Shown here: positions 1 through 64,000 of the stretch, in pieces
Numbering within the stretch: position 1 is the first letter of the stretch
Layout: each line of letters begins with the position of its first letter
From: Auanema rhodensis
Lineage: Eukaryota; Animalia; Nematoda
NCBI GenBank assembly: GCA_964057225.1
Contig: OZ059900.1
Coordinates: forward strand, 4,030,001-4,094,000
Length of the DNA: 64,000 bases
Reading direction: 5' to 3'
Translations under genes and position numbers: made by a program
Notes under the pieces: model-generated
What the model saw: the letters and a program-made list of their open reading frames with translations, nothing else
The model's database searches: none
What the model was told of the DNA's origin: nothing

Positions 1-534
1 AAAATTTTTCCTGCAAAAATACACAAAGAAAAAGTTTTCATGTATAAATACACGAAAAAAAATTTTTCCTGCAAAAATACACAAAGAAAAAGTTTTCATG
101 TATAAACACACGAAAAAAAATTTTTCCTGCAAAAATACACGAAGAAACTACTTTTCTTGCAAAAATACACAAAGAAAAAGTTTTCCTGCAAATATACACG
201 AAAAAAAAATTTTCCTGCAAAAATACACAAAGAAAAAGTTTTCATGTATAAACACACGAAAAAAAATTTTTCCTGCAAAAATACACGAAGAAACTACTTT
301 TCTTGCAAAAATACACAAAGAAAAAGTTTTCCTGCAAAAATACACGAAAAAAAATTTTTCCTGCAAAAATACACGAAAAAAAATTTTTCCTGCAAAAATA
401 CACGAAAAAAAATTTTTCCTACAAAAATACACAAAAAAAAATTTTTCCCTGCAAAAATTCTAAAAAAAAATTTTTCCCTTGTAAAAATTCACTAAAAAAT
501 TTTTCTCCCTGCAAAAATGCGAAAAAAAAAATTT
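1..534. repeat. 29/30-bp minisatellite block (partial)
   Basis: Monomers such as TTTTCCTGCAAAAATACACGAAAAAAAAT (29) and TTTTCCTGCAAAAATACACGAAGAAACTAC (30); the last 3-4 monomers are degenerate. Confidence 0.97.
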
Positions 535-590
535 ATTCAGAAATACTTCCCCGAAGACATATGGTATCAAAATTTCGTTCCTCTCTCATT

Positions 591-685
591 TACTTGATTG
601 ATTCTGTCAGCGCTGTATGCTCAAGTAAAAGATTAAGCCATGCATGTATAAAGTTCATCATTTTTGAGAAACTGCGATAGGCTCA
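591..685 (+). pseudogene. Short 18S rRNA 5'-end copy A (nt 1-95), inverted relative to the main copy; present in every unit
   Basis: TACTTGATTGATTCTGTCAGCGCTGTATGCTCAAGTAAAAGATTAAGCCATGCATGTATAAAGTTCATCATTTTTGAGAAACTGCGATAGGCTCA is the reverse complement of 2279-2373 apart from the first bases and 3 substitutions. Confidence 0.95.
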
Positions 686-820
686 CAGCTCAGAGACCAA
701 AAAAATTTCCAAGTCCAAAAAAAATTTTTTTTTCAACATGTTTTCACGATACTCTCAAAACATTTTTTACACATTTTTAAAGAGTTTTAACATTGGAATT
801 GAGAAACAAAATTTTTTTTT

Positions 821-882
821 TACTTGATTGATTCTGTCAGCGCTGTAGCTTTCGTCAAGGATTAAGCCATGCCAACCGCTCA
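821..882 (+). pseudogene. Short 18S 5'-end copy B (variant middle, internal deletion); present in every unit
   Basis: TACTTGATTGATTCTGTCAGCGCTGTA-GCTTTCGTCAAG-GATTAAGCCATGC followed by CAACCGCTCA, which resembles 18S GAACGGCTCA. Confidence 0.88.
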
Positions 883-59401: not shown

Positions 59402-60245
59402 TACGAATGCCCCCGAATCGTCCCTATTAATCATTAATTCGACTCTCAAACCAATAAATAGAACCGAAGTCCTCTTTTATTATTCCATGATAGCACATAC
59501 AAGCAATCGCTTGCTTTGAGCGCTTTGATTTATTCAAAGTAAACCCGAGCCAGTATACACACCGAAGTACATACACAAAACCGACAAAATAGACACATCT
59601 ATGATTACCGGCAAGCCGTATCACAGAAAATGCCTCAGATCCAACTACGAGCTTTTTAACTACAGCAATAACGTTTTACACTAGTGGAGCTGGAATTACC
59701 GCGGCTGCTGGCACCAGACTTGCCCTCCACTGGGTCCTTGTAGAGCTATTTAAGCTCAGCTCAGTGAAATAATCAATCTAAAAAGATTGATCTTTTTATT
59801 TTTAGTTACTATCTCACTGAAGTAGTGGATAAGTTACGCGCCTGCTGCCTTCCTTGGATGTGGTAGCCGTTTCTAAGGCTCCCTCTCCGGAGTCGAACCC
59901 TAATTCTCCGTTACCCGTGATCACCATGGTAAAACTCTATATTACCATCAGGTTGATAGGGCAAACATTAATCTCGAAAAAAGACAGTAAAACCGTCGAT
60001 TAACTGGGTTATTCAGAGTCAACAAACATTAAATTGGTTTGTACTAATAACTGCGTTGAACTTGGGAAGAAGAACAACTATTAAGCATGTATTAGCTCCA
60101 GAATTACCACAGTTATCCATAGAAATCGAGAAAAATCATATCTGCTCTAATGAGCCGTTCGCAGTTTCTCAAAAATAATGAACTTTATACATGCATGGCT
60201 TAATCTTTTACTTGAGCATACAGCGCTGACAGAATCAATCAGATT
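59402..60245 (-). rRNA. 18S: Truncated 18S rRNA, unit 19
   Basis: Near-identical to unit 1 (offset 57872). Confidence 0.97.
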
Positions 60246-62723
60246 CGCAATAGAGAATCCATTATTTCTTACTAAACAATATAAATATCGAGAAGTAGAA
60301 TAATTTTTTTTTCCCAATTCACCAAAAAAATTAAGAAAGTTGAAAAATCACACAGAAACGACACATTATAGAAAATATTCACATTTTTCAATGTGAACAA
60401 GTAAAATTGCAGATAACGAAAATTATTGTAAAAATTTTCTCCTGCTACCTTACGATTGTGATATCGTTTCGGTGAATAGTGTAACAATCTTCAGATATTA
60501 TTTCATAATGTTTATATTCCGATGAAACATTCCAGTAAAAATTTTATGTAAAATACTTTTCCTGCAAAAATACACCTACAAACTACTTTTCCTGCAAAAT
60601 TACACGAAAAAAAATTTTTCCTGCAAAAATACACAAAGAAAAAGTTTTCATGTATAAATACACGAAAAATAATTTTTCCTGCAAAAATACACAAAGAAAA
60701 AGTTTTCATGTATAAATACACAAAGAAAAAGTTTTCATGTATAAATACACGAAGAAACTACTTTTCCTGCAAAAATACACAAAGAAAAAGTTTTCATGTA
60801 TAAATACACGAAAAATAATTTTTCCTGCAAAAATACACAAAGAAAAAGTTTTCATGTATAAATACACAAAGAAAAAGTTTTCATGTATAAATACACGAAG
60901 AAACTACTTTTCCTGCAAAAATACACAAAGAAAAAGTTTTCATGTATAAATACACGAAAAAAAGTTTTTCCTGCAAAAATACACGAAGAAACTACTTTTA
61001 CCGCAAAAATACACGAAGAAACTACTTTTCCTGCAAAAATACACCTACAAATTACATTTCCTGCAAAAATACACGAAAAAAAATTTTTCCTGCAAAAATA
61101 CACAAAGAAAAAGTTTTCATGTATAAACACACGAAAAAAAATTTTTCCTGCAAAAATACACGAAGAAACTACTTTTCTTGCAAAAATACACAAAGAAAAA
61201 GTTTTCCTGCAAATATACACGAAAAAAAATTTTTCCTGCAAAAATACACGAAAAAAAATTTTTCCTGCAAAAATACACGAAAAAAAATTTTTCCTACAAA
61301 AATACACAAAAAAAAATTTTTCCCTGCAAAAATTCTGAAAAAAAATTTTTCCCTTGTAAAAATTCACTAAAAAATTTTTCTCCCTGCAAAAATGCGAAAA
61401 AAAAAAATTTATTCAGAAATACTTCCCCGAAGACATATGGTATCAAAATTTCGTTCCTCTCTCATTTACTTGATTGATTCTGTCAGCGCTGTATGCTCAA
61501 GTAAAAGATTAAGCCATGCATGTATAAAGTTCATCATTTTTGAGAAACTGCGATAGGCTCACAGCTCAGAGACCAAAAAAATTTCCAAGTCCAAAAAAAA
61601 TTTTTTTTTCAACATGTTTTCACGATACTCTCAAAACATTTTTTACACATTTTTAAAGAGTTTTAACATTGGAATTGAGAAACAAAATTTTTTTTTTACT
61701 TGATTGATTCTGTCAGCGCTGTAGCTTTCGTCAAGGATTAAGCCATGCCAACCGCTCACCGACCACAAAAAAATTTTTTTCACGTACTTGATTGATTCTG
61801 TCAGCGCTGTATGCTCAAGTAAAAGATTAAGCCATGCATGTATAAAGTTCATCATTTTTGAGAAACTGCGATAGGCTCACAGCTCAGAGACCAAAAAAAT
61901 TTCCAAGTCCAAAAAAAATTTTTTTTTCAACATGTTTTCACGATACTCTCAAAACATTTTTTACACATTTTTAAAGAGTTTTAACATTGGAATTGAGAAA
62001 CAAAATTTTTTTTTTACTTGATTGATTCTGTCAGCGCTGTAGCTTTCGTCAAGGATTAAGCCATGCCAACCGCTCACCGACCACAAAAAATTTTTTTTCA
62101 CGTACTTGATTGATTCTGTCAGCGCTGTATGCTCAAGTAAAAGATTAAGCCATGCATGTAGAAAGTTGAACTTTTTAAGCCAAACCGCCAACCGACCAAA
62201 AATTTTTTCTAGTCAAAAATTATGGAAATTTTTGAAAAAATATGCAAATTTTTTTTTTCAAAACTATTTTTCAGAGTAGTCTTATTCTATTTTCTGACTC
62301 TTTTTACATATTTTACACTATATATGAAATATGTTTTGGAAAATTTCCCGATATGGCTTAATCCTTGAGGAAAGCTACAGCGCTGACAGAATCAATCAAG
62401 TAAAATTTGCCATTTTTATCAAAATTTTTGATTTTTTAAATTAAAATTCTCGGGTGACCATTTATATGCGCTTTTTTTTGAAAAATGGTTCCAATATTCC
62501 AATAAAGTATACTTTTTCTTACAAATAAAGTATACCTTTTCTTACAAATAAAGTATACCTTTTTTAAAATAAGGTATCAATATTGCTATCGCTATATACA
62601 ATCAATAAAACGTTATTTGAAACAAGAATAAGGTATACTTTCAGGTATAAAACAAAACATCCAATCAAAGGATAGTCTCAACAGATCGCAGTTTATAAAG
62701 ACTGCTCTACTGGATACAACACC

Positions 62724-63567
62724 TACGAATGCCCCCGAATCGTCCCTATTAATCATTAATTCGACTCTCAAACCAATAAATAGAACCGAAGTCCTCTTTT
62801 ATTATTCCATGATAGCACATACAAGCAATCGCTTGCTTTGAGCGCTTTGATTTATTCAAAGTAAATCCGAGCCAGTATACACACCGAAGTACATACACAA
62901 AACCGACAAAATAGACACATCTATGATTACCGGCAAGCCGTATCACAGAAAATGCCTCAGATCCAACTACGAGCTTTTTAACTACAGCAATAACGTTTTA
63001 CACTAGTGGAGCTGGAATTACCGCGGCTGCTGGCACCAGACTTGCCCTCCACTGGGTCCTTGTAGAGCTATTTAAGCTCAGCTCAGTGAAATAATCAATC
63101 TAAAAAGATTGATCTTTTTATTTTTAGTTACTATCTCACTGAAGTAGTGGATAAGTTACGCGCCTGCTGCCTTCCTTGGATGTGGTAGCCGTTTCTAAGG
63201 CTCCCTCTCCGGAGTCGAACCCTAATTCTCCGTTACCCGTGATCACCATGGTAAAACTCTATATTACCATCAGGTTGATAGGGCAAACATTAATCTCGAA
63301 AAAAGACAGTAAAACCGTCGATTAACTGGGTTATTCAGAGTCAACAAACATTAAATTGGTTTGTACTAATAACTGCGTTGAACTTGGGAAGAAGAACAAC
63401 TATTAAGCATGTATTAGCTCCAGAATTACCACAGTTATCCATAGAAATCGAGAAAAATCATATCTGCTCTAATGAGCCGTTCGCAGTTTCTCAAAAATAA
63501 TGAACTTTATACATGCATGGCTTAATCTTTTACTTGAGCATACAGCGCTGACAGAATCAATCAGATT
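62724..63567 (-). rRNA. 18S: Truncated 18S rRNA, unit 20
   Basis: Near-identical to unit 1 (offset 61194). Confidence 0.97.
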
Positions 63568-64000
63568 CGCAATAGAGAATCCATTATTTCTTACTAAACA
63601 ATATAAATATCGAGAAGTAGAATAATTTTTTTTTCCCAATTCACCAAAAAAATTAAGAAAGTTGAAAAATCACACAGAAACGACACATTATAGAAAATAT
63701 TCACATTTTTCAATGTGAACAAGTAAAATTGCAGATAACGAAAATTATTGTAAAAATTTTCTCCTGCTACCTTACGATTGTGATATCGTTTCGGTGAATA
63801 GTGTAACAATCTTCAGATATTATTTCATAATGTTTATATTCCGATGAAACATTCCAGTAAAAATTTTATGTAAAATACTTTTCCTGCAAAAATACACCTA
63901 CAAACTACTTTTCCTGCAAAATTACACGAAAAAAAATTTTTCCTGCAAAAATACACAAAGAAAAAGTTTTCATGTATAAATACACGAAAAATAATTTTTC

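Follow-up and report, generated by a model that had tools for sequence, protein, structure and literature searches.

A probable ribosomal DNA-derived satellite of internally deleted 18S–28S units in the nematode Auanema rhodensis

The 64,000 nucleotides analysed here (hereafter the window, in whose own coordinates all positions are given) come from contig OZ059900.1 of the nematode Auanema rhodensis, positions 4,030,001 to 4,094,000 of the forward strand. The whole window (1..64000) is a head-to-tail array, on the minus strand, of 20 internally deleted units derived from ribosomal DNA (rDNA), each of which joins the 5′ part of the 18S rRNA gene to the 3′ tip of the 28S gene. The array was delimited by matches to the Rfam model of the small subunit (SSU) rRNA, by counts of the junction string and by anchoring on flanks. 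It continues past both edges of the window, and 20 is thus a minimum number of units. The 18S sequences start at 2373, 6643, 9648, 12653, 16091, 19096, 22330, 25564, 28886 and 31861 (units 1 to 10) and at 34866, 37871, 40876, 43881, 46886, 49891, 53213, 56535, 60245 and 63567 (units 11 to 20), all on the minus strand. The spacing between units is 2,975–4,270 bp with a mode of 3,005 bp, seven successive spacings are all 3,005 bp, and the unit lengths fall into seven different classes.

Anchoring on unique flanks gave the layout of the unit, which on the minus strand runs from a minisatellite through a 304-nt flank, 18S nt 1–844, a 72-nt tail and the 3′ external transcribed spacer (ETS) to a spacer that carries copies of the 18S 5′ end. 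In unit 3, whose features other than the spacer cassette are all on the minus strand, the minisatellite (9953..10811) has a period of 29 bp and higher-order periods of 88 and 146 bp; across the units its length is 770–2,124 nt. The flank immediately 5′ of the 18S sequence (9649..9952) is 5′-ETS-like, although no promoter was located in it, and it is 304 nt long in all 20 units, with 0–2 single-nucleotide polymorphisms (SNPs). It is followed by 18S nt 1–844 (8805..9648), identified by Rfam SSU matches and covering the 5′ domain and some of the central one, and by the last 72 nt of 28S rRNA (8733..8804); at its fusion with 18S nt 844, one nucleotide (A) is assignable to either side. The 3′ ETS contains 3.6 copies of a 23-nt repeat (8578..8658), and the spacer cassette (7870..8479) holds three antisense copies and one sense copy of short 18S 5′-end sequences. 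Two classes of 3′ spacer, 905 and 1,223 nt long, differ in whether a 318-bp segment is present once or twice (an example with 2.2 copies lies at 23464..24164); units 5, 7, 8, 9, 17, 18 and 20 have the long class. The short class carries three antisense and one sense 18S 5′-end copies, and the long class five antisense and one sense.

The fusion is the same in every unit. The distance from the 18S start to the junction is exactly 844 nt in 20/20 units, and the 25-nt string made of GGGGGCATTCGTA and GGTGTTGTATCC on the two sides of the junction occurs exactly 20 times in the window, always on the minus strand; each half likewise occurs 20 times, never without the other. The model SSU_rRNA_eukarya matches all 20 units (E ~1e-131 to 1e-148) from model position 1–4. 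Over the 916-nt segment of 18S and tail, the units differ from unit 3 at 0–4 places, the most diverged copy being unit 1 (tail at 1458..1529, minus strand; 4 SNPs in 916 nt), and 1,654 nt of aligned sequence give the array a nucleotide diversity of 0.16%. Neither the 5.8S model nor the large subunit (LSU) models of Rfam gave a match anywhere in the 64-kb window. The unit lacks 18S from nt 845 to its end, both internal transcribed spacers (ITS1 and ITS2), 5.8S and all of 28S except the last 72 nt, and it is therefore unable to encode a ribosome. These are not functional rDNA transcription units, as the complete 18S-ITS1-5.8S-ITS2-28S set is absent, and the array cannot supply 18S, 5.8S or 28S rRNA. 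Coding potential of another kind was considered and rejected, since the window contains no credible open reading frames, the only ones being artefacts of the minisatellite. An earlier interpretation made from the letters alone (the sequence-only reading) had described 20 units of one layout with a common junction, few SNPs and 3′-ETS repeats, and had concluded that the fragment cannot build a ribosome. Our counts agree with each of these statements, and the check it had proposed with the Rfam SSU model returned matches in every unit.

What is the 72-nt tail? The Rfam LSU model was run on the whole unit (E up to 1), a slice of 113 nt and the tail's 72 nt by themselves (E up to 10), and matched none of them. 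We therefore turned to an indirect test, in which a 17-nt motif of the tail was searched in metagenome contigs; it was found at 119 loci, and four contigs with whole rDNA units were analysed with Rfam. These four contigs gave five full or partial LSU matches, and in every one 24 nt separate the end of the motif from the LSU 3′ end (model end 3401); in the window, the motif is followed by the last 23 nt of the tail. When the window was aligned to the metagenome LSU 3′ ends, homology began exactly at the junction and reached the LSU end, whereas upstream of the junction the window has 18S and the aligned metagenome rDNA has 28S. By BLAST, all 72 nt of the tail align to the metagenome LSU 3′ ends with ~90% identity (E ~6e-23), and in the reverse direction one LSU 3′ end recovers all 20 tails (E 3e-11 each). 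Judged by this homology, the tail is identified as the 28S 3′ terminus, as the sequence-only reading had proposed, and the fusion holds. That reading had also named the lack of an LSU-model match at 1458–1529 as grounds for giving up the fusion. The match is indeed lacking, but the fusion is upheld by the position of the motif, the alignment and BLAST. We reject the missing direct match as a refutation, and it does not count against the fusion, since the sequence of the tail is also the one in which full LSU matches of other rDNA terminate; what it shows is how insensitive a model of 3,401 positions is to a terminal piece of 72 nt. As a point of method, LSU_rRNA_eukarya is silent on a genuine 72-nt 28S 3′ terminus even when this is isolated and E is allowed up to 10, and short remnants of rRNA genes will escape such model scans.

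The junction is also found in public sequencing data. The sequencing runs were examined as Logan contigs only, which are able to show presence but not absence, and the depths given here are sums of contig means (assembler word depth), a rough guide and a poor measure of copy number. DNA run X1 contains a 72-nt contig that matches 8776–8847 with 0 mismatches at a depth of 3,829 and comprises 29 nt of the tail and 43 nt of 18S. At the junction, the other 18S contigs diverge from the window into TCCCTGCGCGAGAGG, the canonical 18S continuation, and the other tail contigs arrive from GCATACGACTTGTATACTGGTCA, which lies upstream in canonical 28S; metagenome rDNA has matching sequence at the equivalent position in each case. 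At most 1 nt of the join is common to both partners. A deletion guided by homology was considered in view of the word CATTCGTA, in which the 18S sequence ends at the junction and to which a similar word exists in some 28S sequences ~30 nt upstream of the tail, but it was rejected because the join lies elsewhere.

How does the array relate to the main rDNA of the species? At ten places in 8300–8804, runs X1, X3 and X9 carry another letter in ~98–100% of the depth. At nine of the ten, one of which is in the 28S tail, the letter of the window is fixed in 20/20 units, so that the fixed divergence between the array and the dominant rDNA is 9/505 nt, or 1.8%. Because these nine fixed differences (1.8%) stand against 0.16% within the array, we conclude that the array homogenises apart from the main rDNA. 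In X1, window-type contigs were found at five of the ten places at depths of 3.4–6 thousand, near the 3.8 thousand of the junction contig; no window-type contig was counted among the Logan contigs at the other five. The major spacer type in X1 has a depth of ~60–460 thousand, comparable in order of magnitude to that of the rRNA genes. We take the spacer of the array to be ordinary rDNA spacer and the mini-units to form a lineage of their own, homogenised internally, that makes up roughly 1–2% of rDNA-type copies. Any estimate of copy number finer than this rough ratio was abandoned, the depths being sums of contig means and X3 being probably an RNA-rich library: in this run, labelled ‘DNA?’, 18S and 28S stand ~100-fold above the spacer. 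X3 also contains Nextera adapter ends. In X1, the rDNA-type depth is ~100 times that of the mini-array (at least 20 copies), which would mean a very large main rDNA, of the order of a thousand copies, unless the summed depths are inflated.

The canonical rDNA of the same genome has in common with the array the 5′ flank, 18S nt 1–844, the 28S terminus and the 3′ ETS, and differs from it at the nine fixed spacer and tail sites and by a 2-nt indel in the V4 region of 18S, where most 18S contigs of the runs have two extra letters (T, G) at 8947–8948 relative to the window. In organism B, a sister taxon, position 8950 reads CC. Within the array, some variants are shared by neighbours: 215T>G and two spacer SNPs occur in units 14 and 15, and 702G>A in units 17, 18 and 20. 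These shared variants, the blocks of equal length and the position of the diverged unit 1 nearest the edge all fit amplification and homogenisation by unequal exchange. A further G/A polymorphism, at 8602, follows the long-spacer class, with A in units 1, 5, 7, 8, 9 and 17–20; the main rDNA has A here, and either past exchange with that array or retention of the ancestral letter might account for the pattern.

How might this array have arisen? We considered it likely that it is an rDNA-derived satellite, that is, an array of pseudo-rDNA units which came from one deletion, were amplified, and have since evolved apart from the main rDNA. It has homology to rRNA genes and rDNA spacer (the SSU matches, the LSU 3′ tail and the major spacer type in X1); its 20 units are tandem, head to tail and of high identity (diversity 0.16% over 1,654 nt); of the rRNA set it encodes only 18S nt 1–844 and the 3′ 72 nt of 28S; and it differs from the dominant type of three runs at nine fixed sites. 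Since one junction is common to all copies, a single deletion event is indicated, as the sequence-only reading had also supposed. The event may have been an illegitimate end-joining within a single canonical rDNA unit, at a join where the two sides could overlap by 1 nt, and would have taken out everything from 18S nt 845 through the position 73 nt before the 28S 3′ end, perhaps ~5–6 kb by analogy with full rDNA units. It would have left intact the whole intergenic spacer and both gene termini; that both ends of the transcription unit were kept had been noted before, and normal rDNA spacer is in fact retained on both sides. The deleted unit would then have been amplified, most likely by unequal exchange between sister chromatids or homologues, into an array that now spans at least 64 kb, is homogenised internally and presumably no longer exchanges sequence with the main rDNA.

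Several points weigh against this reading. The Rfam LSU model does not score the 72-nt tail directly. The junction contig was found in run X1 only, which may be the assembly's own sample, and it has 29 letters on the tail side, two below the 31-letter bridging rule; because the 31-mer at 8775–8805 is also present in canonical 28S, however, a 72-nt contig is the expected form of a junction-specific unitig. X3 and X9 yielded no window-type spacer contigs, which is not evidence of absence, as Logan contigs drop rare variants, and summed word depths remain poor measures of copy number. Finally, the absence of function, and with it the status of a neutral satellite rather than a working locus, is something that we infer. 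Some of these points would suit an artefact, in which the assembler repeated a chimeric or collapsed consensus: rDNA is difficult to assemble, and the sole run with the junction may be the assembled sample. We nevertheless regard an artefact as very unlikely, because of the junction contig in X1, the seven length classes and the unit-specific SNPs, some of them shared among neighbours; short-read words for the junction and for the window type at five of the ten differing sites also have a consistent depth of ~4,000. Equally hard to credit is an origin through RNA, in which a reverse transcriptase working on pre-rRNA changed its template, passing from the 28S 3′ terminus to 18S nt 844, and produced a cDNA that was inserted into the genome and then amplified. 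The complete non-transcribed spacer (minisatellite and 18S-start cassette) is kept, colinear with that of normal rDNA, and for this reason a DNA deletion is favoured over a retro-copy; there is, moreover, neither poly(A) nor a target-site duplication, and a deletion in DNA requires fewer steps.

Three other proposals were considered. The array might lie at a chromosome end and be discarded from the soma by programmed DNA elimination, in the manner of lamprey Germ1 (PMC9734144); such elimination is widespread in Rhabditidae (10.1101/2025.08.21.671558). The 64-kb window contains no telomere repeat, and we consider germline restriction possible but unlikely; it is compatible with the satellite reading and would complement it. 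More doubtful is a defective-interfering or regulatory mini-rDNA, in which RNA polymerase I (Pol I) makes a ~1.2-kb chimeric pre-rRNA (5′ ETS, 18S 1–844, 28S tip and 3′ ETS) that absorbs factors of the SSU processome or, as an ‘erroneous rRNA’, feeds the nematode pathway of antisense ribosomal small interfering RNAs (risiRNAs), which represses Pol I; transcript and effect together seem improbable to us. The sequence-only reading had likened the unit to a defective-interfering or selfish rDNA whose chimeric RNA could titrate Pol I or SSU-processome factors; the present data lend this speculation no support and do not refute it. The full spacer, 304-nt 5′ flank and 3′ ETS of normal rDNA are kept, the major spacer type in X1 has a summed depth of rRNA-gene order, and in C. 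elegans erroneous rRNAs are reported to induce risiRNAs that inhibit Pol I (PMC8450093). Against this stand the lack of a located promoter and the data of X11, the one run that is clearly RNA. The sequence-only reading had suggested looking for the junction in RNA data, but among the Logan contigs of X11, a shallow run, none crosses it despite 18S depths above 7,000: the bin 8775–8799 has depth 0, the 18S contigs (depths 7,216 and 7,417) all proceed into canonical 18S at the junction, and the V4 insertion at 8947–8948 is missing from no more than 0.35% of the RNA depth. X11 excludes only a stable, abundant chimeric RNA. As the 3′ ETS of the main rDNA is itself absent from X11, transcription at the level of pre-rRNA from ~1–2% of units would be invisible there, and the signal in X3 cannot be assigned because that run is probably RNA-rich. 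Still more speculative, and in our view highly improbable, is the idea of a working ‘decoy’ locus, where a truncated pre-rRNA transcribed by Pol I from a putative spacer promoter would seed antisense ribosomal siRNAs or sequester early SSU-processome factors and so act as a genetically encoded brake on the synthesis of rRNA, which might operate only in the germline if programmed DNA elimination discards the array from the soma.

As an rDNA-derived satellite, the array belongs to a known class. In tomato, rDNA-derived satellites include transitional arrays that still contain gene fragments (Jo et al. 2009, PMC2679016). Like the array described here, these are tandem and born from rDNA, have lost rRNA coding while the spacer was kept and amplified, and spread by recombination and not by transposition. 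Their history differs, with insertion of a long terminal repeat (LTR) retrotransposon, duplication of spacer into 25S and stepwise loss (PMC2679016), whereas in A. rhodensis we find a single clean deletion, which left 18S nt 844 next to the terminal 72 nt of 28S, retention of the whole spacer and both ends of the transcription unit, and a homogeneous 3-kb unit. Germ1 of the lamprey, which consists of truncated 28S rDNA and R2-derived sequence and is eliminated from the soma (PMC9734144), is likewise an amplified repeat with a truncated piece of an rRNA gene, distinct from the working rDNA. Its junction is the R2 insertion boundary and it is germline-limited (PMC9734144); the present array has an 18S::28S junction without a transposon. 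The human genome contains dispersed rDNA pseudogenes (Robicheau et al. 2017, PMC5381670), which are also non-functional rDNA-derived sequences, spacer included, outside the canonical arrays. The human copies are degraded and dispersed, whereas the array here is young-looking, homogenised and at least 64 kb long, with 99.8% identity between units. In the literature covered, which is incomplete and so gives weak evidence of novelty, we found no description of a nematode mini-rDNA, nor of an 18S-5′-half::28S-3′-tip array in nematodes or elsewhere.

If the proposed history is correct, the window offers a clean, datable snapshot of the birth of a satellite from a gene array, from deletion through amplification to independent concerted evolution (1.8% from the parent versus 0.16% within). 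There is also a practical caution, in that amplicons of the 18S 5′ half and copy-number estimates based on k-mers will, in this species, take in a non-functional paralogue. Should the array prove to be transcribed or germline-limited, it would be a natural experiment on the surveillance of truncated pre-rRNA, although nothing here shows either state.

Some minor observations concern the variation of rDNA and its spacers. Run X11 contains a second, very different version of V4 (loose ends at 8946/8947) at similar depth, possibly because 18S is expressed in two variants or because the run includes a second organism. Contigs without 8600–8727 (127–129 nt of the 3′ ETS, with AA or AAT instead) occur in three of four runs, and in organism B they have a depth of 3,500, equal to that of the long form; the two forms are length variants of the region with the 23-nt repeats. 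The 18S copies in the spacer of the array span the first 47–91 nt of 18S, are mostly antisense and, in the BLAST alignment, all start at 18S nt 5; the 318-bp segment with two of these 5′-end copies is duplicated in 7/20 units. The metagenome rDNA contig whose 18S is nearest to that of the window (L012, 79% identity) repeats, within 6528–6726, the final ~45 nt of 28S; the additional copy sits 182 nt downstream, in the 3′ ETS. Duplications of gene ends in spacers seem recurrent in the group.

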